Notes under the pieces: model-generated
Database searches by the model: none
Told to the model about the DNA's origin: nothing
The model's input: only the letters and a program-made list of their open reading frames with translations
Sequence record: MT586120.1
Direction: 5' to 3' (one strand)
Length of the DNA: 64,000 nt
Position numbers and translations under genes: made by a program
In this document: piece after piece, positions 28,825-64,000 of the stretch
How positions within the stretch are numbered: the first letter of the stretch is position 1
Layout of the letters: each line of letters opens with the position of its first letter

Positions 28825-29034
28825 ATGGATTCCGTAGCACTATTCCTTTCTAGGGACTACACAATGAGTATCATTCAAGCATTACGTGAAGCAAAGGAGA
28901 GGTGTGATGGAGATGGGCGTAGGATTATGGCTAAACAATATGAAGAAGTTGAGACCATTATGCGTGCTCAACACGATATTGCCCAAAGCATTAGGGAAAA
29001 TATGGATCGGAACGGCGGCGACTACTCAATCTGA
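28825..29034 (+). CDS. hypothetical protein
   Basis: ORF; start uncertain. Confidence 0.55.
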   Translation: MDSVALFLSRDYTMSIIQALREAKERCDGDGRRIMAKQYEEVETIMRAQHDIAQSIRENMDRNGGDYSI

Positions 29035-29090
29035 ACCACTTACCAAAGTGTCCACTACCCCTTGCGGTTCTGCTCGTGAGGGGTTATATT
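29034..29090 (+). promoter_or_regulatory. repeated promoter cassette
   Basis: AACCACTT-accA-AAGTGTCCAC, hairpin, TATATT. Confidence 0.75.
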
Positions 29091-29145
29091 ATATTCATCA
29101 GCCGTGGTATAATAGCTTATTGGACCCAACCATTCTTCTTATTAA

Positions 29146-29961
29146 ATGAATAAACCATTCCTCAAGTGGGCAGGCAACAAGTTTCGTGTCCTTCCCCATC
29201 TCATTCCACATATCGGGTATCCAAAGACTTATTGTGAGCCATTTGGGGGTAGTTTATCTGTTGCATTGAATAATGCTGCTGATAAGTATATTCTAAATGA
29301 TATCAATAAAGACCTTGTAGCTATATACAATAACATTAATAGTGATGGTGAAGACTTTATTCAGTACTGTAATGAGTTGTTCATACCAACTAACAATACT
29401 AAAGAGGCATACTTAGATATACGTAGCCAGTTTAATACTTGTACTGATATGAGAGAACGTGCTCGTATCTTTGTTTATCTCAACCGCCACTGTTTCAATG
29501 GCTTGAGTAGATACAATAGTAAGGGTGGTTTCAATGTTCCTTTTGGTAAGTATGATTCACCTAAATGTCCTATTGATGAGATGAGATTCTTTCATAAGTA
29601 CTTTGAAGGTAAGGAAGTATCCTTTAATTCACTATCATTTGAGCACGAGTCACTATATTCTAGCTTAGGTGAAGGTGACGTTCTCTATATGGACCCACCA
29701 TATGTTCCTGCTACAGAGACAGCAAACTTTACGAGTTATGCTACAGAGGGATTTACTCACGACCAGCAGGTTAAGTTAGCTAACATTGCTGAGGAGTTAT
29801 CATCAAAAGGTGTTAAGGTTATTATAAGCAATCACGATGTACCAATTACTAGAGAATTATATAAGAACGCTAAAATCTACAGTATTCAAGTTAGTAGAAC
29901 CATTTCAGCAAAGAGTAGTAGTAGGAAGAAGGCAAGCGAGCTCATCGCAGTCTACGGATAA
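29146..29961 (+). CDS. dam: DNA adenine methyltransferase (Dam/D12 class)
   Basis: KPFLKWAGNK, EPFGGS, YLNRHCFNGL.RYN.KG.FNVPFG, YMDPPY. Confidence 0.95.
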   Translation: MNKPFLKWAGNKFRVLPHLIPHIGYPKTYCEPFGGSLSVALNNAADKYILNDINKDLVAIYNNINSDGEDFIQYCNELFIPTNNTKEAYLDIRSQFNTCTDMRERARIFVYLNRHCFNGLSRYNSKGGFNVPFGKYDSPKCPIDEMRFFHKYFEGKEVSFNSLSFEHESLYSSLGEGDVLYMDPPYVPATETANFTSYATEGFTHDQQVKLANIAEELSSKGVKVIISNHDVPITRELYKNAKIYSIQVSRTISAKSSSRKKASELIAVYG

Positions 29962-30016
29962 GCCACTTACCAAAGTGTCCACTAACCCACCCGGTGCTGC
30001 CGTGGTGGGTTATACT
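29961..30016 (+). promoter_or_regulatory. repeated promoter cassette
   Basis: AGCCACTT..AAGTGTCCAC, AACCCACC/GGTGGGTT hairpin, TATACT. Confidence 0.8.
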
Positions 30017-30043
30017 AGTTGTATCAACAGAGCAGAGAGCTAC

Positions 30044-31297
30044 GTGATCCAACTTCGTCCCCATCAGCAAGAATCACTCAACAAGCTGACCGTGGCGAGC
30101 CGTGGTCAAGTGATCGTCCCTACTGGCGGCGGTAAGACTCTTATCGGTATTATGGATGCCTGTAAGCGCTTTGAGAGCGCTTCTGAGCCCATCTCCATCA
30201 TTGTTGTGGCTCCACGTTTACTTTTAGCTAACCAGCTCTGTGAAGAGTATATGGAGGTCATCAAGGATCAAGTTTCTACTCAAGTTGTTCCCGCTCATAT
30301 TCATTCTGGGGACACCTCACATTTCTCTACCACCAAAGCCTGTGAGATCCGTAACTTCGTCTCTATGACTCAGGCAGCTGGTCTTCACCGCATTTTCTTT
30401 ACCACCTATCACAGCCTTCATAGGATCGCTGAGAGTAGTGTTCAAGCGGACACCATCTACTTTGACGAGGCACACAACAGCGTTCAGAAGGGCTTCTACC
30501 CAGCTGTAAAGTTCTTCTCAGAGACCACGCAACGCGCCTTCTTCTTCACCGCTACACCTAAGCACAGTGTGACCCCAAAGAAGCCTGGAATGAACGACAG
30601 CAGTGTCTATGGAAACGTTATCGTGAACGTAGAAGCAGGCAAACTTGTCCAAGGGGGCTTCATCGTTCGTCCACAGGTCGTAGCACGTGAGCTGCGCCTA
30701 CTCCAAAAAGATGAGCTGACTTCTCACCGTGATTCCGAGCACATCATTCAGAGCATCGACGAGAGTCGCGTTAGTAAGGTTCTGGTCTGCGCCAAGAGTG
30801 TAAAACAGATTGTTCGTATGGTTGCTGAGTCTTCCTTTGTGAATGACTTGAAGGCACGTGGTTTTTCTTATATGTACATTGCTGCTTCCACAGGAGCAAT
30901 CATCGATGGACGCAAAGTAACCCGCGAAGAGTTCTTTAAGACCCTCAATGCTTGGGGTGCCGATAACACGAAGCAGTTCGTTGTTTTACATCATTCTATC
31001 CTCTCTGAGGGTATCAATGTATCTGGGCTTGAAGCTGTTATTATGCTGAGAGCTATGGATGCGGTAGGTGTCGCGCAAACAATCGGAAGAGTTATTAGGC
31101 TTCACGAAGATGATGCCGCTGGTCTGCGTGCGGGCACCATCACACCAGGTAACACTTCTGAGTATACTAAAAGCTTCGGTCTTGTTATTGTACCCGTGTT
31201 CAACACTACTCAACAGGGCGTAGCGCGTTCCGTTGATAAGATTGTTGATACCATCTTCAACAAAGGTGAGGCAGCTGTATCTGTTATCCGTCGCTAA
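30044..31297 (+). CDS. SF2 DEAD/DEAH-like helicase (type III restriction Res-like)
   Basis: LRPHQ, PTGGGKT, FDEAH, TATPK, LSEGINV, QTIGRVIR; GTG start after cassette. Confidence 0.9.
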   Translation: MIQLRPHQQESLNKLTVASRGQVIVPTGGGKTLIGIMDACKRFESASEPISIIVVAPRLLLANQLCEEYMEVIKDQVSTQVVPAHIHSGDTSHFSTTKACEIRNFVSMTQAAGLHRIFFTTYHSLHRIAESSVQADTIYFDEAHNSVQKGFYPAVKFFSETTQRAFFFTATPKHSVTPKKPGMNDSSVYGNVIVNVEAGKLVQGGFIVRPQVVARELRLLQKDELTSHRDSEHIIQSIDESRVSKVLVCAKSVKQIVRMVAESSFVNDLKARGFSYMYIAASTGAIIDGRKVTREEFFKTLNAWGADNTKQFVVLHHSILSEGINVSGLEAVIMLRAMDAVGVAQTIGRVIRLHEDDAAGLRAGTITPGNTSEYTKSFGLVIVPVFNTTQQGVARSVDKIVDTIFNKGEAAVSVIRR

Positions 31298-31503
31298 ATA
31301 CTAGAAAGAATGGCTATACCATGGAACCAATCACACTAACAATACTAGTTGGCTTGATGCAAGTATCACCAACTCACTGTCAATTTGAATTGCTACATCC
31401 AAATGGAGTTATTGACACTCACGTTGTTAAGTGTGAGTATATCATCAATGGTGATATACTACCAATCACATAAATATCATTACATTACCTTTAACCACAA
31501 TAC

Positions 31504-31525
31504 CTCCCGCAAGGGGGGTTTTTTA
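31504..31525 (+). terminator. intrinsic terminator
   Basis: CTCCC-gcaa-GGGGG plus T-run. Confidence 0.6.
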
Positions 31526-31589
31526 ATGGAATCTTCACAATTCAGCTCATCCGTGTTAGAATACATACATTGTTACGATACACTACACA

Positions 31590-31895
31590 ATGAAAGCATT
31601 TTTCTTAATCCTTGCTAGTGCAGTTCTAGCATCCCCCGTAGCTGCTGCTGAGGTAGGTGTGCGCCATACTCACGGTCATACCACTAGCAACACATACAAT
31701 GGTCGCTCAGTCACCCGTAGCCACTCACAGGGCAGCTTTGCAGAGGTCTCTGGTGGTGGTTCTGCCGGTCATAATGGTGGTTCTGGTTATCGCCGCGTAG
31801 AGGCAGGCAGCTATGGTAGCCGCACCCGTGAAAGTTTTGATTTTAACAGCAGAACTACATCAACATTCACTGAAAGTAGCACTTTTAGTCGGTGA
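31590..31895 (+). CDS. small secreted Ser/Gly-rich protein
   Basis: Signal peptide MKAFFLILASAVLASPVAA. Confidence 0.75.
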   Translation: MKAFFLILASAVLASPVAAAEVGVRHTHGHTTSNTYNGRSVTRSHSQGSFAEVSGGGSAGHNGGSGYRRVEAGSYGSRTRESFDFNSRTTSTFTESSTFSR

Positions 31896-31958
31896 TCAGA
31901 CCAATTCTTAGCGAGAAAGAAGAGATAAGCCCCAAAATGTCCTATTTTACCTACAACA

Positions 31959-32468
31959 ATGCTAAAACATTTGTTCGTGGGAGCACTTATCTCTTTTTCT
32001 TGCTCCCCTGTGCTTGCTAACGGTCAATCTACCGTGTCTTCCAGTAGTAATGCACAAAATAACCAGAATAACAATGGAACTGTGAATCTTGCCCCTATGG
32101 GTGGTTCAAACTCCAACTATCAGATCAATTCTGTATCAAATAGCCAGTACCAATTCGGTCCTGGTATCTCTTGTCCCACACCTGAACTTGGTATTGGGGC
32201 TTTTGGGGGCAATAATAGCTCATTTGATTCTGATTATAGCAACGGTTCTAACAATATAGGTGCAACCTTAATGTTTACTACACCTTTGGGCGGTGATATT
32301 GGTCGTTATTGTAAAGAATTGGTACAGGAGATCACCAAACAACGGCAATTGGACACAAAGGTGACTATGATTCGCCAATGTGCGCAGTTTGCTCGGGAAG
32401 GTGTTATACTAGACACCGAACAGTTCCCCGAGTTCGCTATCTGCTCTGCTGTAACAGTCACTCGGTAA
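31959..32468 (+). CDS. secreted hypothetical protein
   Basis: Signal peptide; four Cys (SCPTP, RYCKE, RQCAQ, AICS). Confidence 0.75.
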   Translation: MLKHLFVGALISFSCSPVLANGQSTVSSSSNAQNNQNNNGTVNLAPMGGSNSNYQINSVSNSQYQFGPGISCPTPELGIGAFGGNNSSFDSDYSNGSNNIGATLMFTTPLGGDIGRYCKELVQEITKQRQLDTKVTMIRQCAQFAREGVILDTEQFPEFAICSAVTVTR

Positions 32469-32511
32469 ACTGTCCACTAATCCACGACAGCCTAGCCTAG
32501 TGGGTTATACT
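32466..32511 (+). promoter_or_regulatory. repeated promoter cassette
   Basis: AACTGTCCAC, hairpin, TATACT, CATACCAAACAAGG leader. Confidence 0.8.
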
Positions 32512-32540
32512 ATTCACATACCAAACAAGGTCATTCACAA

Positions 32541-34294: not shown

Positions 34295-34597
34295 ATGGAT
34301 TTTATAGTAACAGTTAGAACATACACTGGTGCTGTTAAGTCAGTAGAAGTCAAGAACATGCCCGATGAGGATGCTGCCCGTGCTGAAGCGGTTAGCTTAA
34401 CCTTCGGGCGTGTTCTTTCTATTGAGAGGACAGATACTGAGGAAGTTGTAGTAGCTACTACACCAAAGAAGAAAAAGCGGAAACTACCTGAAATTGAAAG
34501 AGAACTGATGCCTGGTGAGACTGAAACTATCGTCACAGGATACGATAACAACCCACTAGCAGTTTTCACATATCTAAATGATGATGGGTTGGTGTGA
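34295..34597 (+). CDS. hypothetical protein
   Basis: ORF MDFIVTVRT... Confidence 0.65.
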   Translation: MDFIVTVRTYTGAVKSVEVKNMPDEDAARAEAVSLTFGRVLSIERTDTEEVVVATTPKKKKRKLPEIERELMPGETETIVTGYDNNPLAVFTYLNDDGLV

Positions 34598-34651
34598 CGG
34601 CTGATATAGTGTCCACCTAACCCCCACAGGGGTGGTTTTTTATTATATGAT
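34593..34651 (+). promoter_or_regulatory. repeated promoter cassette
   Basis: GTGACGG..AGTGTCCAC, CCCC/GGGG hairpin plus T-run, TATGAT. Confidence 0.75.
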
Positions 34652-34672
34652 GACTTCATACGAAACGAACTG

Positions 34673-34885: not shown

Positions 34886-34941
34886 AACCACTTCCTAAAC
34901 TGACCACTGAACCCCCACAGGGCACCCAAATGCCCTATACT
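34886..34941 (+). promoter_or_regulatory. repeated promoter cassette
   Basis: AACCACTT..AACTGACCAC, GGGCA/TGCCC hairpin, TATACT. Confidence 0.8.
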
Positions 34942-34964
34942 AATTACATCAACACAGCACTACT

Positions 34965-35396
34965 ATGGCTCGCCACTCCGAAGTTCTTATCCAAGGCGTC
35001 AACGTTCCAGGCGGAAACTTCAAAGTAACAGTTCCCGTAGACTCCTCCTATGCTTCCGATGCTGCTCGTAACATCTATCCATACGATGGAGCACAATACA
35101 TCTGGATGAAGTCTTGGGAGGTTGGTCAGTCCTCTCGTGGCGGTGGTGGCTCCTCCTCTGGGGCAGGAATGGGTCCAGGCACCATCGTAATGGGGCTTAT
35201 TGGTCTTATCCTGGTTGCTGGTATTGGTTCTGCCTTTGAGGATGATACATCACCTGTTGAGACCCCCCAGGCTGCCCCTGTAGAGCGTGTTCAGGCAGCT
35301 CCTGCTCCCGTTGCACCTGCTGCTGAACCACAGTTTAGGGACTATGCTAGCCCTCCTCCTTCCTACTGCATCACTGAAAACTTTGAGCCTTGCTGA
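34965..35396 (+). CDS. single-TM membrane protein
   Basis: TM segment IVMGLIGLILVAGIG; Pro/Ala-rich tail. Confidence 0.7.
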   Translation: MARHSEVLIQGVNVPGGNFKVTVPVDSSYASDAARNIYPYDGAQYIWMKSWEVGQSSRGGGGSSSGAGMGPGTIVMGLIGLILVAGIGSAFEDDTSPVETPQAAPVERVQAAPAPVAPAAEPQFRDYASPPPSYCITENFEPC

Positions 35397-38420: not shown

Positions 38421-38422
38421 TA

Positions 38423-38477
38423 GACAGTTCTAATAGTGTCCACTGCCCCTTGCTAGGGGCTTTTTTGTTGTTATACT
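38423..38477 (+). promoter_or_regulatory. repeated promoter cassette
   Basis: GACAGTT..AGTGTCCAC, GCCCC/GGGGC plus T-run, TATACT. Confidence 0.8.
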
Positions 38478-38507
38478 ATGTTCAACCAACCAAACCAACC
38501 CAACCAA

Positions 38508-40239: not shown

Positions 40240-40295
40240 ACCACTTTGAGTAGTGTCCACTGCCCCAACACAGGGGCATTTTTATGCTCTATAAT
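40239..40295 (+). promoter_or_regulatory. repeated promoter cassette
   Basis: GACCACTT-tgagt-AGTGTCCAC, TGCCCC/GGGGCA plus T-run, TATAAT. Confidence 0.8.
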
Positions 40296-40318
40296 AATTT
40301 CATTGAAACGGACACACC

Positions 40319-41278
40319 ATGCACACCACCAAGACTCTCTATGTAGAGACAGACTCTGCCGAGACAGACTCTGCTAAGGTTACGGGGCTTTTCAGAAACA
40401 TTATTGGTGACGCATTTGACGCAGATGAACGCGCCAAGCAATATAAGGGGAAGAGACGCCAAGACTTCTTTGGTCATTGGGATTTACCTCCAGGTATACG
40501 TGATTACCTCATTCATACAGAACTTAAGCGCCCCTGTTATAGTGAACGAGTGATCTGGAGAGATCCTAAGGTATCAGATGTGCAGTCGAAAGAAGTATTT
40601 GACTTTTTTGTTGATAAAAACAGTACAGTAGCAGAAATGAAGCAAGTTGTTATTGATCTTATAAGTGAAGTTGTCCTTTCTATTGGTGGAGAGTCTAAGG
40701 TAAAGCCGTTTATTCCCACTACATGGCAGAGAGACGCTATTAGATTTGTTGCTCAGTCTCTATCTGAAGGTAAGACTACTCTAATGTTGGAACTTGCTGC
40801 TCGCTTTGGTAAGACTGGAACTAGCGTTTGTATGTTTGACTATTCCAGTGCGGATGTTATGGTAGTTACAAACTATGTAAAAACTGTTAATAAAAGTTTT
40901 GGTAATACTGTTGTTGACTTTTTTGCGGACAGAATGGTCTATGTTGATGCTAGATCTAAAAATGCAGAGTCTATGATTGATTCTGCACTAGCTAATGGGA
41001 AAAAAGTTGTTCTTGTATGTAGTTTACACCATAGCCAAAATTTAGATTATAATATTGATATGATCCGAAAGTATGATAACAGGATAGTTTTTGTGGATGA
41101 AGCGGACTTTGGTTGTCATAAAGACAAACAAGTAAGTCGAGTCAAACGACTAAGAGAAAATGTTCCGCTCATTCTTATGACAGGCACTGGTGCGGACAAG
41201 GCAGCTGCTAGCCATCACATAGATGGTATGCTCTCAACCACATATTTTGATATGCTGTTACAGACTAACAAGGCTTGA
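40319..41278 (+). CDS. SF2 helicase, N-terminal (RecA1) half
   Basis: PTTWQ (Q motif), ARFGKT (Walker A-like), VDEADFG, MTGTG; ends before RecA2. Confidence 0.8.
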   Translation: MHTTKTLYVETDSAETDSAKVTGLFRNIIGDAFDADERAKQYKGKRRQDFFGHWDLPPGIRDYLIHTELKRPCYSERVIWRDPKVSDVQSKEVFDFFVDKNSTVAEMKQVVIDLISEVVLSIGGESKVKPFIPTTWQRDAIRFVAQSLSEGKTTLMLELAARFGKTGTSVCMFDYSSADVMVVTNYVKTVNKSFGNTVVDFFADRMVYVDARSKNAESMIDSALANGKKVVLVCSLHHSQNLDYNIDMIRKYDNRIVFVDEADFGCHKDKQVSRVKRLRENVPLILMTGTGADKAAASHHIDGMLSTTYFDMLLQTNKA

Positions 41279-44198: not shown

Positions 44199-44219
44199 TT
44201 ATCCATCAGCTTAACGCAT

Positions 44220-49955: not shown

Positions 49956-49996
49956 GTAAAGTGTCCACATGCCCGACCCATCCACAACTACTATAG
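49948..49996 (+). promoter_or_regulatory. degenerate promoter cassette
   Basis: GACAGTA..AAGTGTCCAC; hairpin eroded. Confidence 0.55.
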
Positions 49997-51325: not shown

Positions 51326-51371
51326 GCAAAGTGTCCACTGCCCCTTGATAGGGGCTTTTTTATGCTATAAT
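51319..51371 (+). promoter_or_regulatory. repeated promoter cassette
   Basis: AAGTGTCCAC, GCCCC/GGGGC plus T-run, TATAAT, TTCATACCAAAC. Confidence 0.8.
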
Positions 51372-51395
51372 TTATTCATACCAAACAACAGGGCA

Positions 51396-51599
51396 ATGGC
51401 TTCTCACTACAATGGCTTCATGGATGACGCGACAGCAGCTCTACCTAATAGGTCCGAGGATGAGTTGACCGAGGTATTTTATTTACTTGAGTTGTTTAGT
51501 TCTCAATACACCCCCGAGGACGGGGACTATACAGAGTACCTAAAGACGAGATTAATCTCATATCATACATCATTAGGTATGATGGATCCAGATCAATAA
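51396..51599 (+). CDS. hypothetical acidic protein
   Basis: ORF between cassettes. Confidence 0.65.
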   Translation: MASHYNGFMDDATAALPNRSEDELTEVFYLLELFSSQYTPEDGDYTEYLKTRLISYHTSLGMMDPDQ

Positions 51600-51641
51600 G
51601 TGTCCACTAATACACCATAGCCCACCTAGGTGGGCTATACT
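51598..51641 (+). promoter_or_regulatory. repeated promoter cassette
   Basis: AAGTGTCCAC, perfect palindrome AGCCCACCTAGGTGGGCT, TATACT. Confidence 0.8.
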
Positions 51642-51669
51642 ATATTCAACAAGCAAAGCAAACTAGTCA

Positions 51670-56012: not shown

Positions 56013-56069
56013 GTGCCAATAGGTGAAGTGTCCACAAAACCGAATATTTACCCCAGGATGCCTTATAGT
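56013..56069 (+). promoter_or_regulatory. repeated promoter cassette
   Basis: GTGCCAAT..AAGTGTCCAC, TATAGT. Confidence 0.7.
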
Positions 56070-56101
56070 TGATTCATCAACACAAAGGGGCATCCTTTTT
56101 A

Positions 56102-56396: not shown

Positions 56397-56600
56397 ATGA
56401 ATCTTACAAACGACCAGCGCCTAGCTCTTGCTCAACGTATCACTGACGAGTTTAAATTGTTCGTTAAAGAAGAACTAGTATATCAAGTTGATGATATGAA
56501 AGATAACGACCAGCTGAATCACGATTACTATATTACATCTAGCGATCAAGAGGATATCACAAAACTAGTAATTGACCTCATTGCTGTGCCAGTTAGCTAA
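56397..56600 (+). CDS. hypothetical protein
   Basis: ORF ending inside next cassette. Confidence 0.65.
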   Translation: MNLTNDQRLALAQRITDEFKLFVKEELVYQVDDMKDNDQLNHDYYITSSDQEDITKLVIDLIAVPVS

Positions 56601-56642
56601 GTGTCCACTAAATCCCCCACTGGTTCGCTAGTGGGTTATATT
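56586..56642 (+). promoter_or_regulatory. repeated promoter cassette
   Basis: GTGCCAGTT-agct-AAGTGTCCAC, CCCAC/GTGGG, TATATT. Confidence 0.8.
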
Positions 56643-56666
56643 AATCACATCAACACAAGAACCCCA

Positions 56667-56855
56667 ATGACCTCCGATCTCATCGAACTAATGGAAGCAC
56701 AGGGATCCGATGGAATCCTAGAAATGATGGCTGATAGAGATGGTTCAGCTTTCTTGCTTGATAGGCTCTTTGCTTCAATGGATGAGACGGAAGTTGCCGA
56801 GTGGACCACCTGGTTAAAGACCAGTTTGAAAACCTACACATCAAACCACCCATAG
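56667..56855 (+). CDS. hypothetical protein
   Basis: ORF between cassettes. Confidence 0.6.
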   Translation: MTSDLIELMEAQGSDGILEMMADRDGSAFLLDRLFASMDETEVAEWTTWLKTSLKTYTSNHP

Positions 56856-56875
56856 GGTCCTCAATGCCCTATACT
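56819..56875 (+). promoter_or_regulatory. repeated promoter cassette (dyad eroded)
   Basis: GACCAGTT, AATGCCCTATACTAATCACATCAACACAGG. Confidence 0.7.
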
Positions 56876-56898
56876 AATCACATCAACACAGGACCCCA

Positions 56899-57096
56899 AT
56901 GGACATCAGAGTATACTGTACATCTGAGGAGAGTTTAAACCAAGCAGTGGAGCTTATCCAAATGCTAGACGATAATGCTAGCATCTCCACGTGGGAGCCT
57001 GATGGGGACGATGGGACCTATGGGGCATTCGTTGATGGTATTGACGATCAACTAGCCACCACCTTGGGACAGTTGTACGAAGTGTCCACTGACTGA
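56899..57096 (+). CDS. acidic hypothetical protein
   Basis: ORF reading through next dyad (QLYEVSTD). Confidence 0.65.
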   Translation: MDIRVYCTSEESLNQAVELIQMLDDNASISTWEPDGDDGTYGAFVDGIDDQLATTLGQLYEVSTD

Positions 57097-57123
57097 CCCA
57101 CTGGGTCCTCAATGCCCTATACT
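57066..57123 (+). promoter_or_regulatory. repeated promoter cassette
   Basis: GGGACAGTT..AAGTGTCCAC, TATACT. Confidence 0.8.
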
Positions 57124-57147
57124 AATCACATCAACACAGGAACCCCA

Positions 57148-57303
57148 ATGAAAAAGTCATTCAAGGTTTGTCTCTCAAAGATGGATAATCCAAATTTCCT
57201 TAATTTTATTATTGTTGAGGATTGTGTTGATATGGATGAATGTGTTGAACATATTCACTCCACCGAAAGAGGATGGGTGATTGATTCTATCAAGCAGCTT
57301 TGA
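57148..57303 (+). CDS. small hypothetical protein
   Basis: ORF between cassettes. Confidence 0.6.
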   Translation: MKKSFKVCLSKMDNPNFLNFIIVEDCVDMDECVEHIHSTERGWVIDSIKQL

Positions 57304-57304: not shown

Positions 57305-57361
57305 GGGACACTTAGCTAAGTGACCACTGAACCACCCATAGGGCACTCAATGCCCTATACT
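57305..57361 (+). promoter_or_regulatory. repeated promoter cassette
   Basis: Near-perfect dyad GGACACTT-AGCT-AAGTGACC, GGGCA/TGCCC, TATACT. Confidence 0.85.
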
Positions 57362-57385
57362 AATCACATCAACACAAAACAACCA

Positions 57386-57706
57386 ATGACCACTGCCCCA
57401 CATTTCGTTCGTTCTACAATGAGCCTCGGACCTACTGAGAGCATCTGCTTCAAAGTGAGCTGTGACGCAAAAGCACAATGGGAGAATGGAATCTTCCACA
57501 ACTCACGATATGGAATCTTCTTTCTTTGTGAGGAGGGAGGGAAGCTGAAGCTTGAGCTCACATCAAAGGGACTCGACACCATTAAGTTCCGTAAGTGTAC
57601 AGTCAAGAGTGAAGCAGGGGCAGTGAACCGCATCCTAAAATGGATGGGTGATATTATGGGAGACAGTATCTTCCTTCCTATGCCTGAGTTTGAGGAAGCA
57701 AACTAA
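57386..57706 (+). CDS. conserved hypothetical protein
   Basis: WENGIFHNSRYGIF...KFRKCTVKS. Confidence 0.75.
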   Translation: MTTAPHFVRSTMSLGPTESICFKVSCDAKAQWENGIFHNSRYGIFFLCEEGGKLKLELTSKGLDTIKFRKCTVKSEAGAVNRILKWMGDIMGDSIFLPMPEFEEAN

Positions 57707-57816: not shown

Positions 57817-57984
57817 ATGAACAACTACATCGACGACGCAGCACTCTATGAAGATATACTGCGCGAGGACGAAGTATATAATGGGCTACGCAGGCTTGAG
57901 CTGCCTGTAAGGGATGGACGCAGGCAACAGCGTAGACGCAGGGAGCGCCAGCGTCAAGCTTGTTACAATAAGTATCACAACTAG
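57817..57984 (+). CDS. small Arg-rich protein (not in track)
   Basis: MNNYIDDAALYED...RRQQRRRRERQRQ. Confidence 0.5.
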   Translation: MNNYIDDAALYEDILREDEVYNGLRRLELPVRDGRRQQRRRRERQRQACYNKYHN

Positions 57985-58039
57985 GACAGTATACTAACTG
58001 TCCACCAAACCAACACAGCGCAGCCATCTGCGCTATATT
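57984..58039 (+). promoter_or_regulatory. repeated promoter cassette
   Basis: GGACAGTA..AACTGTCCAC, AGCGCA/TGCGCT, TATATT. Confidence 0.8.
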
Positions 58040-58063
58040 ATATACATCAACACAAGGAACCCA

Positions 58064-58231
58064 ATGAACACATTCACACCCAATCCTATGCTTGAGATGT
58101 TAATGAGTCGTGAACAGTTAATGGAAGATATTGATGCGATTGTTGATAGTTTTGACCGTGATTCAGAAAGTAATGATGATTTAGTTTCTAGGCTATGTGA
58201 TGCTGTATGTGCTAATTTCCCCGCTAAGTAA
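58064..58231 (+). CDS. small acidic protein (not in track)
   Basis: MSREQLMEDIDAIV...LCDAVCANFP. Confidence 0.7.
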   Translation: MNTFTPNPMLEMLMSREQLMEDIDAIVDSFDRDSESNDDLVSRLCDAVCANFPAK

Positions 58232-58488: not shown

Positions 58489-58545
58489 GTGCCAGTTGCG
58501 CTAGTGTCCACTAAATCACCCACTGGGCTCCTGGTGGGTTATATT
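58489..58545 (+). promoter_or_regulatory. repeated promoter cassette
   Basis: GTGCCAGTT..AGTGTCCAC, CCCAC/GTGGG, TATATT. Confidence 0.8.
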
Positions 58546-58568
58546 AATCACATCAACACAAAACCTCA

Positions 58569-58811
58569 ATGAACACCCTCAAAGATCTCCAAGCTAGAGT
58601 TGCCGCACTAATTGAACAGCAAGGCGAAGATTCTGTATGTGCTGCGTGGATTTACACTGGCGAAGATGTTATTAGATATGACGAAAATTGTGATGCAATA
58701 CGTCAGCCCAAAGAATTGAGAGATAAAGTAATAAATGGTTTAGATGACTATGATTACATTTATCAAGTTATTGATGAGGCTATTACTCAAGAATTAGATG
58801 AGTGTGTGTGA
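58569..58811 (+). CDS. hypothetical protein
   Basis: LIEQQGED..CAAWIYTGEDV. Confidence 0.75.
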   Translation: MNTLKDLQARVAALIEQQGEDSVCAAWIYTGEDVIRYDENCDAIRQPKELRDKVINGLDDYDYIYQVIDEAITQELDECV

Positions 58812-58864
58812 CAGTTGGGCTAGTGTCCACTGGGGCTAGCAGCTCCCCACCTAGCTGCTACAAT
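58808..58864 (+). promoter_or_regulatory. repeated promoter cassette
   Basis: GTGACAGTT..AGTGTCCAC, GGGG/CCCC, GCTACAATTGATTCATACCAAAC. Confidence 0.85.
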
Positions 58865-58890
58865 TGATTCATACCAAACAAGGGAACCCA

Positions 58891-59091
58891 ATGAACACCG
58901 TTGAAATCAACTACGAAATCGCCAAGCTTCGTGAGGAGCGTCAGCAGCTGCTGAACCGTGCGAACGTAATCGGTGATTGTATCCAAGAGCTTGCGCAGCT
59001 GCGCACCAAACAGCAACTTGCCTCAAAGCGTGAGCACGATGAGCGCTTCGAGTCCAGTGAGGACCTATTCGCTGAGATGTTTGGCGGTTGA
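58891..59091 (+). CDS. coiled-coil hypothetical protein
   Basis: ORF between cassettes. Confidence 0.7.
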   Translation: MNTVEINYEIAKLREERQQLLNRANVIGDCIQELAQLRTKQQLASKREHDERFESSEDLFAEMFGG

Positions 59092-59138
59092 TTAAGTGGC
59101 ACAAGGGGGCTAGGCAAGCCCCCACCACCTGCTACAAT
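59083..59138 (+). promoter_or_regulatory. repeated promoter cassette
   Basis: AAGTGGCAC, GGGGGCT/AGCCCCC, TACAAT. Confidence 0.8.
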
Positions 59139-59165
59139 TGATTCATACCAAACAAAGGAACCCCA

Positions 59166-59432: not shown

Positions 59433-59472
59433 TGCCCTCTCGCTACAAATAAAAACCACTAAAAAACACAAA

Positions 59473-59739
59473 ATGATCAGAACTCAAATCACTGTTGAAA
59501 TCAAGCGTAGCGAGTGGGAATGTTACATCGACACCCCAGATTCAGTCATCGAAACTATTAACAACTACTTTGCCTTTGTATTACAATCACGTGATACGGC
59601 ATTAGAAGCACAAGCTGAAATCTTTAAGTTTATGTGCATGTTTAGTGAGTTTGGTTTCTATGATAGTGAGCCTAGGCAATGTGCAACAGATACTATTAAC
59701 GATTTCTTCGGGGCAAGCTTGAGCAGGTGGGACAGTTGA
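59473..59739 (+). CDS. hypothetical protein
   Basis: FSEFGFYDSEP; ends inside next dyad. Confidence 0.7.
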   Translation: MIRTQITVEIKRSEWECYIDTPDSVIETINNYFAFVLQSRDTALEAQAEIFKFMCMFSEFGFYDSEPRQCATDTINDFFGASLSRWDS

Positions 59740-59786
59740 GCTAGTGGCACAAGGGAGCCGCCACTGGCTCCCACAGCTGCTATGAT
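59729..59786 (+). promoter_or_regulatory. repeated promoter cassette
   Basis: GGGACAGTT..AGTGGCAC, GGGAGCC/GGCTCCC, TATGAT. Confidence 0.8.
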
Positions 59787-59813
59787 TACAAAGTAATCGA
59801 GGGAGACACCCCA

Positions 59814-60005
59814 ATGAACATTCAAGTCAACGGCTACGCAATCGACACCCTTAAGCAAGCGCTTCAAGAGTCTTCGATGCTATGGCAAGAGCGTATCCTG
59901 CAAGCCGAGCGCGGCGAGCGTCAAAACCTCAGCATCGAGGGAGCCCGTATGATGCAAGATGACTTGAGGGACATCCTAGAGCAAATCAGGTTGCAAGACG
60001 CCTGA
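59814..60005 (+). CDS. hypothetical protein
   Basis: ORF between cassettes. Confidence 0.7.
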   Translation: MNIQVNGYAIDTLKQALQESSMLWQERILQAERGERQNLSIEGARMMQDDLRDILEQIRLQDA

Positions 60006-60007
60006 TC

Positions 60008-60052
60008 AACTGGCACACGGGAGCCACACAGGCTCCCACCACCTGCTACAAT
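60008..60052 (+). promoter_or_regulatory. repeated promoter cassette
   Basis: AACTGGCAC, GGGAGCC/GGCTCCC, TACAAT. Confidence 0.8.
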
Positions 60053-60078
60053 TGATTCATACCAAACAAAGGAACCCA

Positions 60079-60336
60079 ATGAACGGCTGGACTAACTACG
60101 AAACCTGGAACGCATCACTTTGGATCAGCAACGAGGAGTTCCTCTACAACACCGCTCGCGCTTGCGTGACCTATTGTGACCCCAGCGAGCAGCCTTGGAC
60201 CAAGTTCGTCCGTTGTATGACCGAGGGACAGATCGGCAGCTTCCTTGGTGAGACTGGCGATGGCGTCCGCTGGGATGATACCAGCATCAACGCCGATGAG
60301 ATGAACGAGATGATGCTAGAGTTAGTCGCTGACTGA
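60079..60336 (+). CDS. conserved phage hypothetical protein
   Basis: NGWTNYETWN..LWI.N.E.LY...TGDGVRW. Confidence 0.8.
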   Translation: MNGWTNYETWNASLWISNEEFLYNTARACVTYCDPSEQPWTKFVRCMTEGQIGSFLGETGDGVRWDDTSINADEMNEMMLELVAD

Positions 60337-60381
60337 ACTGGCACAAGGGGGCTCGCAGCCCCCTCCCACAGCTGCTACAAT
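60336..60381 (+). promoter_or_regulatory. repeated promoter cassette
   Basis: AACTGGCAC, GGGGGCT/AGCCCCC, TACAAT. Confidence 0.8.
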
Positions 60382-60407
60382 TACAGAGTAATCAAAACAC
60401 AGCACCA

Positions 60408-60578: not shown

Positions 60579-60589
60579 ACCAATCTCCA

Positions 60590-60634
60590 AACTGTCCCAA
60601 TGGGGTTGACGGTTCCCCTCAAAACCGTTATATT
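60590..60634 (+). promoter_or_regulatory. repeated promoter cassette with canonical -35
   Basis: AACTGTCC, GGGG-TTGACG..CCCC, 17 bp, TATATT. Confidence 0.8.
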
Positions 60635-60696
60635 AGATTCATCGGTTGAGCCACACTCTACAGGCTCCCGGTTATCCACCTCATTTCTCTACAACA

Positions 60697-60999
60697 ATGA
60701 AAACCACACTTTCCACAATCTTCAGCCGCAATAACGTGATGAATGCCCTCCTGGCTCTCTGCACTGCTATCGAGTTCTGCTACGATATGGGCGCACGCTT
60801 CGGTACCTGGTATCGCCAGGGAGGGCGTGAGGAGCTCATCAAAGCCGTTGCCCTTATCATCACCGCAATCGTCTGGACCATCTCTACAGCCCGTCTGGGG
60901 GCACAGGTAGTCCGCACCAACGGACCAACCTGGCTCGCACAGGCTAACGCAACACGCCATCGTATCAGCCGCGCATTCAGCTACGAGTATGCCAGCTGA
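60697..60999 (+). CDS. membrane-associated hypothetical protein
   Basis: Hydrophobic segments. Confidence 0.65.
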   Translation: MKTTLSTIFSRNNVMNALLALCTAIEFCYDMGARFGTWYRQGGREELIKAVALIITAIVWTISTARLGAQVVRTNGPTWLAQANATRHRISRAFSYEYAS

Positions 61000-61046
61000 G
61001 ACACTGACACAAGGGGGCTAGGCAAGCCCCCATCACCTGCTACAAT
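60990..61046 (+). promoter_or_regulatory. repeated promoter cassette
   Basis: TGCCAGCT..ACTGACAC, GGGGGCT/AGCCCCC, TACAAT. Confidence 0.8.
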
Positions 61047-61076
61047 TGATTCATACCAAACAAAGGGAGACACCCA

Positions 61077-61307
61077 ATGTCCAGCACCACTTACACCCAG
61101 GCAGCTTACGCCGAAGCAATCCGCCGCCTCTCGGCTGGCTACGTTTCAGAGTTTGCTGAGTTTGCTGCAGGTGATGAGAGGATGCATGAGCTGATGATGG
61201 AACTTGCTTCTGAGTTCGTTGATGCCAATCTACCCATCGTCAGGGAGGAGGACGCAATCGACGTAGCTGCTGAGCTCCACTTGGGCATCACAATCCGTGC
61301 CGTGTGA
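61077..61307 (+). CDS. acidic hypothetical protein
   Basis: ORF between cassettes. Confidence 0.75.
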   Translation: MSSTTYTQAAYAEAIRRLSAGYVSEFAEFAAGDERMHELMMELASEFVDANLPIVREEDAIDVAAELHLGITIRAV

Positions 61308-61361
61308 CGGCTGACCAACTGACACAAGGGGGATAGCTAAGCCCCCACCACCTGCTACAAT
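61304..61361 (+). promoter_or_regulatory. repeated promoter cassette
   Basis: GTGACGGCT..AACTGACAC, hairpin, TACAAT. Confidence 0.8.
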
Positions 61362-61389
61362 TGATTCATACCAAACAAAGGAACCTCAA

Positions 61390-61704
61390 ATGCGCAAGAT
61401 TGAAATCCAAATGAACCGCGCTGTTCAGTCTGGCACCAATTTCAGCCAAGCTAACACCTCAGTTCATCATCACGAGGGTGTGGCTGTGGTTCGCCTGCAC
61501 GGTAACAAGATCGCTGAGGTAGGCGACGATTTCATCACTCTCTTCGATGGTGGCTTCCAATCCACTACCACCAAGAGCCGCCTCAATGCCTTGATGGCTG
61601 AGTTCTGCTCACCCGGTGAGAACGTATTCCAGAAAGCTTACCAGTGGTTCATCAAAGCCAATGGCGTCACCGTTCCATTTGAGTCAGGTGTGACACTCCG
61701 CTAA
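61390..61704 (+). CDS. conserved cyanophage hypothetical protein
   Basis: MRKIE.QMN.A, V.LHGNKIA, DGG.QS.TTKSRLNAL. Confidence 0.8.
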   Translation: MRKIEIQMNRAVQSGTNFSQANTSVHHHEGVAVVRLHGNKIAEVGDDFITLFDGGFQSTTTKSRLNALMAEFCSPGENVFQKAYQWFIKANGVTVPFESGVTLR

Positions 61705-61748
61705 ACTGGCACACGCTCCCTAGCGGGAGCTCCCCCAGCTGCTACAAT
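61690..61748 (+). promoter_or_regulatory. repeated promoter cassette
   Basis: GTGACACT..AACTGGCAC, GCTCCC/GGGAGC, TACAAT. Confidence 0.8.
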
Positions 61749-61774
61749 TGATTCATACCAAAGGAACCAAACCA

Positions 61775-62365
61775 ATGACCAAACTCACCACGCTTCAGGT
61801 TGCAGCCAAGCTCAAAACCACTGATTTCAGTGCATTCCCTAAGCCCGGTAAGAATAAGGGCGACCGTGGGCAGCTTCTTGAGTTAGCGCTTGGCGTTGCT
61901 AATTCTAGCGACTTGACTGACCTCCTCGATGGTGAGATTAAATCATTCACTCAAGGGCAGACGATTGCAGTCACCCAAGTTAAGCATTGTCTTACCGAAA
62001 TCATCGAAGAGAAAGTATCATTCAAAGAGAGTAAAGTCGGAGAGAAGTTAAAGCAAGCAATTTACGTAGGCTTCACTCGCAATAACGATTACATTGGTAC
62101 TGAGATTGTAAACGAAGAAAATTCAACAGCACATTATCAAGAATTGGAAGAGGATTACAACTTCATTGCTGATAGCATCCGCAACGCATTCGATACTAAT
62201 ACAACATTAGCAACTATCACTGGACCTAACAAACTCCTGCAAATTCGTACCAAGGCATCTAAAACCAACGGCAGATATGTGCCCCTATGTTATGCTGGTC
62301 AGACAATGAAAGATAAGGCAATGGCGTTCTATCTTACCGCTGGTTTCGGTAAAGAAATCATGTGA
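61775..62365 (+). CDS. MutH/Sau3AI-family PD-(D/E)xK endonuclease
   Basis: NKGDRGQLLELALG, D..DGEIK, LLQIRTKA, AFYL..GF parallel MutH motifs. Confidence 0.75.
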   Translation: MTKLTTLQVAAKLKTTDFSAFPKPGKNKGDRGQLLELALGVANSSDLTDLLDGEIKSFTQGQTIAVTQVKHCLTEIIEEKVSFKESKVGEKLKQAIYVGFTRNNDYIGTEIVNEENSTAHYQELEEDYNFIADSIRNAFDTNTTLATITGPNKLLQIRTKASKTNGRYVPLCYAGQTMKDKAMAFYLTAGFGKEIM

Positions 62366-62421
62366 GCCAGTTGAGCCACTGGCACAGGGAGCCTAGCAGG
62401 GCTCCCCCCAGCTGCTACAAT
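62364..62421 (+). promoter_or_regulatory. repeated promoter cassette
   Basis: GAGCCAGTT..ACTGGCAC, GGGAGCC/GGCTCCC, TACAAT. Confidence 0.8.
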
Positions 62422-62447
62422 TGATTCATACCAAACAAAGGAAACCA

Positions 62448-62729
62448 ATGGGAATCTCACTCGATCAGCAAGTCGCACAGCTCGCAGCCGAAGGTCATCA
62501 AGAGATTGCAGTCATCAAACTCCCTAGTCAGGCAACCCGCAAGCGTCGCAAGCCTAGCAAGCGTCGCACTCCACAAACCACTAACGCGGTCAGCCAAACA
62601 ACCTACACTCAAACCGAGAGCCGCAACCTAGGCAAGATTAGTTCAGCCTATGCGCGTCAAGTCCGAGCAGATAGAAGGGCAGCGGCTCAACAAAAAGCAG
62701 CCGAGCTTAACGGTCAGCCAATCTTCTAA
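62448..62729 (+). CDS. basic hypothetical protein
   Basis: Arg/Lys-rich RKRRKPSKRR. Confidence 0.7.
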   Translation: MGISLDQQVAQLAAEGHQEIAVIKLPSQATRKRRKPSKRRTPQTTNAVSQTTYTQTESRNLGKISSAYARQVRADRRAAAQQKAAELNGQPIF

Positions 62730-62772
62730 GAGGCACAAGGGGGCTAGCAGCTCCCCCCCTAGCTGCTACAAT
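62715..62772 (+). promoter_or_regulatory. repeated promoter cassette
   Basis: AAGAGGCAC, GGGGG/CCCCC, TACAAT. Confidence 0.8.
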
Positions 62773-62799
62773 TGATTCATACCAAACAAAGGAACTCAA

Positions 62800-63264: not shown

Positions 63265-63271
63265 TTCTATC

Positions 63272-63308
63272 AAGGGGCTAGCCACCTAGCCCCGATCTAT
63301 GCTACAAT
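63272..63308 (+). promoter_or_regulatory. repeated promoter cassette (dyad absent)
   Basis: GGGGCTAG-ccac-CTAGCCCC, TACAAT, TTCATACCAAAC. Confidence 0.75.
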
Positions 63309-63335
63309 TCATTCATACCAAACCAGGAACCGACA

Positions 63336-63554
63336 ATGCCTTTCTCACCTGCCTGCCGCCTTTCAGACCAGACCCGTGTATGGGTTGAGCGCTCAATTCA
63401 CGAGGGAGTAGACCAGGCACTCGAAGCCAACTTCGGACCAGCACAGGGTCAGACTGCTACCGCCATTGCTCTCCGCTTCGCTGCTACGTATTCAGAGGAG
63501 GGCAAGACGATGAGCCTAGCTAACCCCACTAGCGGAATCAGAGCCGAAGATTGA
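63336..63554 (+). CDS. hypothetical protein
   Basis: ORF between cassettes. Confidence 0.65.
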   Translation: MPFSPACRLSDQTRVWVERSIHEGVDQALEANFGPAQGQTATAIALRFAATYSEEGKTMSLANPTSGIRAED

Positions 63555-63560
63555 CCAGCC

Positions 63561-63599
63561 AAGGGGGTTGACGGATCAGCCCCCTCTATGGTCTACAAT
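63561..63599 (+). promoter_or_regulatory. repeated promoter cassette
   Basis: GGGGGTTGACG..CCCCC, TACAAT; near-identical to the copy at 63757. Confidence 0.75.
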
Positions 63600-63624
63600 T
63601 CTTACATACCAAACAAGGGAACCG

Positions 63625-63768
63625 ATGAACGCCAAAATCTACATAGCATCGATGACCATTGGCTTCACGCTCTCCACCCTAGCCATTGTATTTGGGGCTA
63701 TGTCCTTGGACTTCCAAGAGCCTTCGGCAGCAACCCCAGTTGCTCAAATCACCTGCCAAGGGGGTTGA
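63625..63768 (+). CDS. small single-TM protein
   Basis: IYIASMTIGFTLSTLAIVFGAM. Confidence 0.6.
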   Translation: MNAKIYIASMTIGFTLSTLAIVFGAMSLDFQEPSAATPVAQITCQGG

Positions 63769-63794
63769 CGGATCAGCCCTCTATGGTCTACAAT
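63734..63794 (+). promoter_or_regulatory. repeated promoter cassette
   Basis: TTGACG-18-TACAAT, CATACCAAACAAGGGAACCG. Confidence 0.75.
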
Positions 63795-63819
63795 TCATTC
63801 ATACCAAACAAGGGAACCG

Positions 63820-64000
63820 ATGACGACTCTTCACTCTATCGAAAATCTCACAGCCGAGCTCGACCGCCTAGAGGGAATCAAGAATCGCCTAGCAGGGCTG
63901 ATCGTAGACCTTAAGCTCACCAACCCAGACTCACTATTCATCGGACTCTATCAGGACCGCCTCAAGTTCAATGTTCTCCCCGCCATCAAACTCACCAAGG
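63820..64000 (+). CDS. hypothetical protein, truncated by window end
   Basis: MTTLHSIENLTAELDRL..., open to the edge. Confidence 0.6.
   Translation, partial: MTTLHSIENLTAELDRLEGIKNRLAGLIVDLKLTNPDSLFIGLYQDRLKFNVLPAIKLTK

Follow-up and report, generated by a model that had tools for sequence, protein, structure and literature searches.

How are the many small early-region genes of a T4-like cyanophage brought to expression, and how are they exchanged between close relatives? The question is raised by the window analysed here, which by megablast is identical to positions 1-64000 of record MT586120.1. The record, of 221,362 bp, represents isolate 0809CC03 of Synechococcus phage S-CAM7 (Kyanoviridae, Mazuvirus). 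From the tail-fibre-like genes to the baseplate genes gp25/gp6, this genome carries around 95 mostly small and mostly unannotated genes on the + strand, and the stretch is punctuated by a repeated unit, here named the cassette, which comprises (5' to 3' on the gene strand) a palindrome, a GC-rich segment or hairpin, a -10 box and a leader with the ATG. The block occupies the position of the hyperplastic region in T4-like genomes and is best explained as the hyperplastic early-gene region of a T4-like cyanomyovirus. As annotation and a Pfam scan of around 30 of the region's proteins indicate, the cargo between the cassettes consists mostly of ORFans, methylases and helicases. Taken as a whole, the observations are in our view probably best accounted for by composite terminator-promoter cassettes, whose use is factor-assisted and which are exchanged by homologous recombination of the phage.

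The first-pass annotation of the window had proposed about 35 repeated cassettes between 29034 and 63820, as well as a genome-wide scan with a profile of the unit. The unit was plainly evident once all intergenic spaces, and the 110 nt ahead of candidate start codons, had been listed. Such a profile was built with nhmmer from 31 hand-picked units and run against both strands of the whole 221,362-bp genome. It returned 41 matches, all on the + strand and none on the opposite one, six of which (29034, 29961, 60579, 64029, 117185 and 120421) were outside the training set. Thirty-five matches with E <= 1.5e-5 fall between 29034 and 64096, and the first and the last copy within the window lie at the coordinates originally proposed. 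Two further cassettes occur elsewhere, at 117185 and 120421, ahead of genes at 117263 and 120463, which leaves 35 of the 37 copies between the tail-fibre-like genes and gp25/gp6. Word counts tell the same: AGTGTCCAC is found 15 times, 14 of them on the + strand, against 0.62 expected from shuffles, and the 21-mer CTACAATTSATTCATACCAAA, which covers the -10 box plus leader of the class A cassettes, 12 times against 0 expected. Overall, cassettes are present at 32 of the 92 gene junctions and make up 44% of the intergenic bases and 8.2% of the region. Between 56 and 64.6 kb, 17 of the 22 cassettes head a single annotated gene, in line with the proposal that nearly every open reading frame (ORF) there has its own copy. 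The view of mostly single-gene units does not extend to 29-56 kb, since the 13 cassettes there precede units of 1-13 genes; multi-gene units account for half of the region.

The palindrome measures 24 bp, is imperfect and reads TGTGnCAsTT-N4-AAsTGkCACA; its consensus is clearest in the ACG-2014f phages (TGTGACAGTT-GGAG-AAGTGGCACA) and its right arm takes the form of AAGTGTCCAC, AACTGACCAC or AACTGGCAC in S-CAM7. It is situated at about -62 to -41 relative to the predicted start site, the right arm beginning 65-76 nt ahead of the ATG in the S-CAM7 units. The stop codon of the upstream gene is usually found just ahead of or within the palindrome (left arm, spacer or right arm), and in the copy at 57072 just past the right arm. 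In a set of 131 unique palindromes compiled from S-CAM7, Syn9, ACG-2014f and uncultured contigs, 125 have arms separated by 5 nt, and in 117 the right arm is followed by the -10 box at 28-29 nt (TCCAC type) or 30-31 nt (GCAC type). The variable G/C position of the arms is complementary in merely 31% of the set. For lack of covariation between the arms, a base-paired stem, whether in RNA or in DNA, could be ruled out for the palindrome, which rather resembles a site bound by a dimeric protein.

The segment between the palindrome and the -10 box is constant in length and highly variable in sequence. A hairpin with a minimum free energy of <= -8 kcal/mol is predicted for 62% of the units versus 5.4% of random 29-mers from the region, and at least eight different complementary hairpin stems occur among the S-CAM7 units. 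A T-run follows the hairpin in about a quarter of the copies; in those at 34595, 38422, 40240, 44143 and 51319 and in both copies outside the region, hairpin and T-run have the appearance of a textbook intrinsic terminator. A search of 29-64 kb against Rfam at E <= 1 yielded merely three chance-level matches. In 33 of 34 units there is a -10 box (TATACT, TACAAT, TATAAT or TATATT) whose end lies 21-32 nt ahead of the ATG. It is directly preceded by TGn, and thus of the extended type, in 14 of 33 units (~40%), and the other 19 of the 33 have neither TGn nor a -35 box. No conserved -35 was found in the units: at 16-18 nt, TTGACA is at best matched in an average of 2.9 of 6 positions against a background of 2.5, and at least 4 of the 6 agree in 8 of 34 units. 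Likewise, a sigma-70 -35/-10 scan of the region was not enriched (55 found versus 46 +/- 7 in shuffles) and picks up, among the cassettes, just the few with TAGGCA or TTGACG, by which canonical -35/-10 promoters were ruled out as the cassette type. In class A the weak -35-like TAGGCA lies within the hairpin loop. The leader, finally, is 16-25 nt long and A/C-rich with a weak Shine-Dalgarno sequence, which is AAGGA-like in 19 of 33 units. In this way all the parts listed in the first-pass annotation (dyad, hairpin, the four -10 boxes and leader) were recovered, and the clustering of leader subfamilies by position was confirmed for two families, classes A and B.

The same architecture is found in other phages. 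A blastn search with one class A unit gave matches only in S-CAM7 and in ACG-2014f (Atlauavirus, 65 records), at 5-15 places per ACG-2014f genome among the matches listed, and with the S-CAM7 profile 32, 23 and 28 copies were recovered from three isolates of ACG-2014f, exclusively on the gene strand. A scan of IMG/VR with the pattern AGTGTCCACT-N20-30-TATACT hit at least 120 contigs. Among the 122 matches listed, 80 have a spacing of N = 27 or 28, and these display the full architecture from the left arm through the ATG, with a spacer that is a hairpin, a terminator or C-rich; the matches at other spacings look like chance or coding sequence. One uncultured contig of 14.8 kb contains 14 copies on a single strand, and in many uncultured contigs the unit lies ahead of a homologue of the S-CAM7 AAA+ (cobS-like) gene at 120463. 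In Syn9 (DQ149023) the architecture is seen before gp61, gp63, gp68, gp73 and gp78 (positions 44788, 46304, 47218, 48572 and 51014), with palindrome arms, a spacer of 28-31 nt, the -10 box TATTCT, the leader ATAAGAGTCAAAGG and the ATG; an additional weaker match before the helicase gene gp75 brings the number to five or six. An element upstream of early-region genes in Syn9 was reportedly described by Weigele et al. in 2007, and the units found here are presumably that element, to which the first-pass annotation referred. The Syn9 units resemble those of S-CAM7 in palindrome, spacer, -10 box and leader and likewise lie upstream of small early-region genes, but there are only five or six, compared to 35 in S-CAM7 and 23-32 in ACG-2014f, where several sequence subfamilies occur. 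That the spacer is fixed in length and variable in sequence across genera argues most strongly for a palindrome that belongs to the promoter and is not a mere repeat or recombination site.

Sites for a host factor were sought by scanning 185,579 genomes with TGTGNCANTTNNNNAANTGNCACA, which gave at least 120 matches; those listed came mostly from Acidobacteriota and from a few filamentous cyanobacteria and are uninformative for marine Synechococcus. As an observation in its own right, many Acidobacteriota and a number of filamentous cyanobacteria have the palindrome TGTGnCAnTT-N4-AAnTGnCACA between their genes (~110 loci among the matches listed), in Mojavia twice within 2 kb. No common neighbouring gene was found beside these non-phage palindromes among the matches listed.

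With respect to gene exchange, the three S-CAM7 isolates were compared among themselves, as were three isolates of ACG-2014f. The S-CAM7 isolates KU686213 and KU686212 (= NC_031927) are around 98% identical to MT586120 and differ from it in addition by insertions, deletions and replacements. Events were derived from chained blastn alignments of the region, after which the junctions were inspected base by base. The resulting census is a conservative one of 32 unique events with 64 boundaries, in which shared events were merged by hand and the count is not tree-aware. Nineteen of the 64 indel or replacement boundaries lie inside cassettes, compared to a coverage of 8.2% (binomial P = 6e-7), and in 6 of the 32 events both ends do so, versus 0.22 expected (P = 8e-8). 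The proposal that the array constitutes a platform for the exchange of genes had implied such an enrichment of breakpoints between relatives, and the enrichment and the swaps of whole modules described below bear it out; it holds for part of the variation, as only ~30% of the boundaries are at cassettes.

More explicitly, the gene dmt (29146..29961, +), which encodes a D12 N6-adenine DNA methyltransferase (Pfam PF02086, E=4e-59), is present in MT586120 only, as an 874-bp insertion between two cassettes on the + strand that share the identical 22 nt CCACTTACCAAAGTGTCCACTA. The left repeat, at 29034..29103 (nhmmer E=2e-7), has the palindrome CCACTTACCAAAGTGTCCAC, a hairpin and TATATT; the right repeat, at 29961..30034 (E=1e-8), precedes a ResIII/DEAD helicase gene. 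At the empty site of the KU isolates there is one cassette, which combines the left flank with the right-hand hairpin and promoter and places the crossover inside the palindrome. A 1.6-kb replacement (49974|51593) starts exactly past one AAGTGTCCAC and ends exactly ahead of the next: its left breakpoint is at the 3' edge of a lone palindrome without promoter, GACAGTAAGTAAAGTGTCCAC (49950..49968, +), and its right breakpoint at the 5' edge of the right arm AGTGTCCAC of the cassette at 51587..51665 (+, E=2e-10). In a 3.4-kb replacement, the left breakpoint (40298) is in the leader, just past the -10 box, of the terminator-type cassette at 40240..40319 (+, E=4e-11).

Unrelated genes were seen to occupy one and the same cassette-bounded slot. 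Between the class A cassettes at 61701..61776 (+, E=1e-11) and 62365..62449 (+, E=5e-17) MT586120 encodes a protein of 196 aa (61775..62365, +), and both KU isolates one of 189 aa without detectable similarity to it; the junctions of this swap (61769|62365) are in the leader of the first cassette and at the left arm of the second. The idea that the 196-aa cargo is MutH-like is unsupported, as it has no Pfam match. The 189-aa protein is 44% identical to that of a gene of ACG-2014f isolate C25; this gene and an adjoining one for a DNA adenine methylase are part of a module of 1391 bp, for which the insertion site lies between two cassettes. Behind the following class A cassette (62717..62799, +, E=1e-14) the cargo is swapped for an allele of 31% identity, and one isolate carries a mosaic allele. 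The cassettes at 63553..63625 (+, E=3e-10) and 63747..63820 (+, E=3e-11), the latter being the last complete copy in the window, bracket a small ORF (63625-63750) that is unannotated and missing in KU686212, as evidenced by overlapping high-scoring segment pairs of 69 bp. Similarly, gp067 of ACG-2014f is an indel of one gene, bordered by a cassette duplication of 84 bp; its S-CAM7 homologue (74.5% identity, tblastn) is the 55-aa gene behind the cassette at 47544..47622 (+, E=4e-16). Filled and empty sites were thus found for dmt, the small ORF at 63.6 kb, gp067 and the methylase module of ACG-2014f.

The mark of the process is direct. Indels are flanked by 52, 69, 81 or 84 bp of duplicated cassette, visible as overlapping alignment, with a single hybrid copy at the empty site, and this flanking duplication implies recombination between repeats. 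Moreover, orthologous cassettes can have different hairpins in different isolates, as is the case at 62365 and 62717, and are in that sense mosaics. The crossovers map to different parts of the cassette, namely palindrome, hairpin segment and leader. The comparison of the isolates shows that whole gene modules, to all appearances ready for expression, are inserted, deleted or replaced at cassettes.

On basis of the above, the following scheme can be proposed. Host RNA polymerase would start around 7 nt past the -10 box of each unit. Given that the cassettes lack a -35 box, recognition would be aided by a factor, most likely through the extended -10 together with a dimeric DNA-binding protein, of host or phage, bound to the phased palindrome. 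Hairpins with a T-run would end the upstream transcript and so insulate the unit from upstream transcription. Since the cassettes are direct repeats, homologous recombination can pair non-allelic or heterologous copies, a task that would fall to the phage uvsX/uvsY/gp46-47 machinery, for which the genes uvsX, uvsY and gp46/47 are annotated in the S-CAM7 genome. We infer that the dimeric factor helps promoter use, which we prefer over mere control. A further-reaching version is put forward tentatively, as a possibility that we rate at well below even: the palindrome would be the operator of a dedicated dimeric factor replacing -35 recognition and at the same time the preferred crossover point for the exchange of modules within and between genera. 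According to the same joint proposal, the factor would be virion-borne, encoded by an early phage gene or supplied by the host, and the promoters would be early or middle ones, in cyanomyoviruses that are without Alt/Mod and MotA/AsiA. If so, one short sequence would be both the regulatory address and the recombination joint.

Several points weigh against the scheme of factor-assisted cassettes that are exchanged by recombination. Both the promoter and the terminator activity of the cassettes are predicted ones. The centre of the palindrome is near -52, which is not a classic activator position. The class A hairpins have no U-tract and may therefore terminate poorly, and some homologous units of ACG-2014f and of uncultured contigs have a C-rich spacer that is unable to fold. 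Around 70% of the boundaries are located away from cassettes. Some belong to a 1157-bp deletion, which took place inside ORFs at a microhomology of 6 bp, to in-frame indels or to a divergent patch of 114 bp; others are at plain start codons, at indels of free-standing endonuclease genes or at two further repeat families. Since close to half of the intergenic DNA consists of cassettes, selection for intact genes could be responsible for part of the enrichment. Finally, a link between gene movement relative to ACG-2014f and the possession of an own cassette is suggestive only (Fisher P = 0.07).

Three alternatives in particular were ranked below the preferred reading. The palindrome could be the operator of a repressor or roadblock: an early phage protein bound to around 35 sites would shut the early promoters or stop read-through, and the cassette would still be promoter and recombination substrate. 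The sites are numerous, in a single orientation, at gene ends and overlapping stop codons, they are of the protein-binding type without covariation, lone palindromes such as 49950-49968 occur without a promoter, and promoters with an extended -10 (14 of 33) can act without an activator. However, strict phasing with the -10 box over a variable spacer is predicted by recognition that is coupled to the promoter and not by a simple roadblock, the 19 of 33 units that lack both TGn and -35 would be weak unaided, and a site upstream of -40 is poorly placed for steric repression; we regard this option as rather unlikely. In the comparison that it invites, stoperators of cluster A mycobacteriophages (L5, Bxb1) are asymmetric, measure 13 bp and are recognised by the immunity repressor of these temperate phages. 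They share with the S-CAM7 palindromes a number of around 30 copies, a short protein-binding site, a single orientation and a location in short intergenic spaces, often over stop codons, but they are not phased with a -10 box and S-CAM7 is a T4-like lytic phage.

That cassettes are only promoters, at which breakpoints coincide through selection for junctions between genes, we consider improbable. This alternative gains from the 44% share of cassettes in the intergenic bases, from the two thirds of the boundaries that are elsewhere (including the plain start codons 39599 and 43742) and from the non-significant test of moved genes, but it leaves unexplained the duplicated cassette sequence (52, 69, 81 and 84 bp) around indels with one hybrid copy at the empty site, the six events with both ends in cassettes and the different hairpins inside orthologous cassettes. 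Quite improbable is also an exchange of the site-specific kind, in which a dedicated nuclease or recombinase, homing-endonuclease-like or integron-like, cuts the palindrome and repair follows. It is true that three crossovers coincide precisely with the palindrome or its edge, where just 9-22 nt are shared (dmt and both ends of 49974|51593), that the cargo swap 61769|62365 ends at a left arm, and that HNH and other endonuclease genes, themselves variable, are present in the ACG-2014f region. Nevertheless, other crossovers are in the leader or hairpin segment, hairpins are mosaic within otherwise conserved cassettes, the annotation and the Pfam scans of around 30 region proteins contain no recombinase or integrase, the fixed distance to the -10 box points to a transcriptional role, and short homology suffices for T4-type recombination (PMC2839356). 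The least probable of all, to the point of being barely credible, is a role in RNA, with palindrome and hairpin forming a structure by which messages are processed or stabilised at their 3' ends. The elements are indeed at the 3' ends of ORFs, GC hairpins included, with stop codons embedded in the palindrome, but there is no covariation of the arms (31% complementary), the -10 box, which is a DNA signal of the next gene, lies at a fixed distance, and no Rfam family was matched.

The preferred reading, composite cassettes that are used with the help of a factor and recombined by the phage, finds its nearest precedent in the promoter-early-stem-loop (PeSL) cassettes of RB49/phi1, T4/PST and KVP40/nt-1, whose promoter and terminator activity has been demonstrated, along with mini-circles, and for which a shuffling of modules was put forward (Arbiol et al. 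2010, PMC2839356; Comeau et al. 2014, PMC4122927). Like the S-CAM7 cassette, a PeSL is a small direct-repeat unit of stem-loop, early promoter, Shine-Dalgarno sequence and ATG. PeSLs are concentrated in the hyperplastic region between core modules, where they flank small ORFans and DNA-modification genes, indels and replacements between close relatives map to them, and stems of the GGGG...CCCC type are found in both. The likeness to PeSLs that had been proposed is thus borne out for the -10 box, the stem-loop, the location and the breakpoints. The exception is the -35: PeSLs have a TTGACA-like or TTTACW-like one (TTGACA, TTTACW or TTGYVH, 17 nt upstream of the -10 box), whereas the S-CAM7 units have no conserved -35, and their stem-loop occupies the -35 position instead of lying upstream of it. 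In addition, S-CAM7 has the phased 24-bp palindrome over the preceding stop codon, within which several of the crossovers fall. The hosts differ as well, S-CAM7 infecting a cyanobacterium, and its promoter and terminator roles are predicted from sequence. The S-CAM7 cassettes are of the PeSL type, in a cyanomyovirus variant in which an upstream palindrome stands in for the -35. The sole discussion of PeSLs in a cyanophage that was found, the S-PM2 paper (PMC4503421), holds that they are too sparse there to matter. Published work on S-CAM7 or ACG-2014f that deals with the cassettes was not found, judged by titles and abstracts, nor was GTGTCCAC found in the papers searched together with 'cyanophage' in a relevant context.

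The resemblance to an integron, which had also been suggested, does not hold up. Both are arrays of mostly single genes separated by an imperfect inverted repeat, with unrelated and strain-variable cargo. However, integron cassettes are promoterless and read from one Pc, whereas every S-CAM7 unit has its own -10 box and leader; attC sites fold with paired R/L boxes, whereas the 24-bp repeat shows neither fold nor covariation and is phased with the promoter; and the S-CAM7 junctions occur throughout the unit, in the manner that homologous recombination would predict. An integrase was not seen among the 275 annotated features or the approximately 30 Pfam-scanned proteins of the region, of which most genes are unannotated and part was scanned. 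With the middle promoters of T4, which depend on MotA/AsiA, the cassettes share a -10 box without usable -35 and a conserved upstream box at fixed distance, which suggests factor-dependent recognition. The MotA box of T4 is 9 bp long (TGCTT) and located at -30, the S-CAM7 box is a palindrome at about -62 to -41. Cyanomyoviruses are reported to be without motA and asiA, and the mechanism that times their early and middle transcription is still unclear (review PMC2984593).

For this open question of timing in T4-like cyanophages that lack the T4 regulators, the phased palindrome offers a concrete handle, and the interest would be greater if it proves to be the address of the missing early/middle transcription factor of cyanomyoviruses. 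One promoter architecture is common to Syn9, S-CAM7, ACG-2014f and many uncultured marine phage contigs, and modular shuffling of the PeSL type is extended to cyanophages; what is new beside the PeSLs is the conserved, strictly phased palindrome at cyanophage promoter-like units. As natural isolates from a single coast show, genes for DNA methylases and helicases, nuclease-like genes and ORFans move in the form of modules that appear ready to express. This exchanged layer of genes is likely relevant to host range and to defence and counter-defence in viruses that are abundant in the ocean.

The remaining cassettes, all on the + strand, can be followed along the window (nhmmer E values in brackets). 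The copy at 32457..32533 (1e-12) has a CCAC..GTGG hairpin and TATACT, that at 34595..34670 (7e-8) a hairpin with T-run which was identified by folding and is terminator-like, and that at 34888..34966 (1e-12) a GGGCA-CCCAAA-TGCCC hairpin abutting TATACT, with the leader AATTACATCAACACAG. At 38422..38503 (6e-10) the canonical terminator hairpin GCCCCTTGCTAGGGGC plus T6 is placed between palindrome and TATACT. The copy at 44143..44215 (1.5e-8), also of the terminator type according to the terminator scan, lies ahead of a GNAT gene (Pfam). It is followed by copies with a GGGCA..TGCCC stem at 44528..44597 (8e-10), in which the upstream stop TGA is inside the right arm AACTGACCAC, and with a GGCA..TGCC stem at 45704..45778 (2e-10). 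A degenerate unit at 46733..46770, below profile detection, retains the right-arm-like AAGTGACTAC, a terminator hairpin with T-run and TATAAT, the latter being immediately followed by the annotated ATG of a gene for an N6_N4 DNA methylase. The terminator-type copy at 51319..51389 (5e-12) contains TGCTATAAT and the leader TTATTCATACCAAAC.

Further downstream, the copy at 56014..56087 (9e-9) has a weak hairpin and TATAGT. Class B, with the leader AATCACATCAACAC at 56587..56668 (6e-13), continues at 56820..56901 (6e-9; palindrome degenerate), 57072..57149 (2e-12), 57305..57387 (3e-12) and 58490..58569 (1e-11), and a copy with perfect 7-bp arms, GGACAGT / ACTGTCC, lies among these at 57984..58065 (2e-13). 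Class A starts at 58809..58892 (2e-18) with the extended -10 TGCTACAAT and the leader TGATTCATACCAAAC, and is continued at 59083..59165 (3e-17; hairpin GGGGGCT-AGGCA-AGCCCCC with the -35-like TAGGCA in the loop), 59997..60080 (2e-16; hairpin GGGAGCC..GGCTCCC), 60990..61076 (2e-14) and 61305..61389 (1e-14). Variants of this class are located at 59731..59813 (4e-8; TATGAT and a different leader), 60324..60407 (9e-7) and 63271..63335 (9e-8; right arm unrecognisable). The cassette variant at 60579..60642 (1.5e-5) has a canonical TTGACG-17-TATATT promoter, and at 59433..59472 a degenerate remnant below profile detection consists of GCTACAAAT only. The array continues past the window with the copy at 64029-64096. 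Some deposited gene starts (29975, 56631, 57112, 57350 and that of record 63971-64189) fall within cassettes, in the right arm, in the hairpin or ahead of the -10 box, and were probably called too far upstream.

The G+C content at 58800-64000 is 50%, compared to 41-42% in the remaining genome, and the class A cassettes with their cargo may have been imported as a block from a phage of higher G+C. ACG-2014f was ruled out as the source of the 50% G+C in 58.8-64.5 kb, its region having 43%.

A number of minor observations concern other variable parts of the region. The slot 39595-43742 has three alleles in the three isolates, with junctions at plain start codons and not at cassettes: three genes including an Eco57I-like methylase in MT586120, a set including a DEAD-like helicase in KU686213 and a type II restriction-modification subunit in KU686212. 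At 52756-53303 there are three tandem paralogs of 52-58 aa (starts 52841, 53055 and 53304), of which the first two have the leader CACCCCCACCTCAATCAAACAAACTACACACAAATAACAA in common and KU686212 has one copy fewer. Consensus sigma-70 promoters occur in the region only at 54353-54427, back to back (TTGACA-18-TATAAT on + at 54398-54427, TTTACA-16-TATAAT on - at 54380-54353), adjoining the region's only two minus-strand genes. A tandem array at 54484-54798, with units of 9, 18 and 27 bp (CCATAGAGT / CCATAGAGCCTATTAGCT; 14 overlapping register copies), underlies the annotated minus-strand ORF 54498-54770 and varies in copy number among the three isolates. A second repeat family, with at least 10 copies of ATATACTGCGC in both orientations, lies in the two longest intergenic spaces of the region (55355-55600 and 57706-57870), and its length varies between isolates.

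Just beyond the window, at record 65783-67944, three tandem paralogs of around 240 aa are found. The second and third have near-identical upstream regions and are preceded by TATAAATAC, a T4-type late promoter sequence, in place of which the first has CATAAATAC. Elsewhere, the phage tRNA cluster is headed by a tRNA with the amber-reading anticodon CTA (record 143316-143389), which is annotated as 'tRNA-Pyl'.

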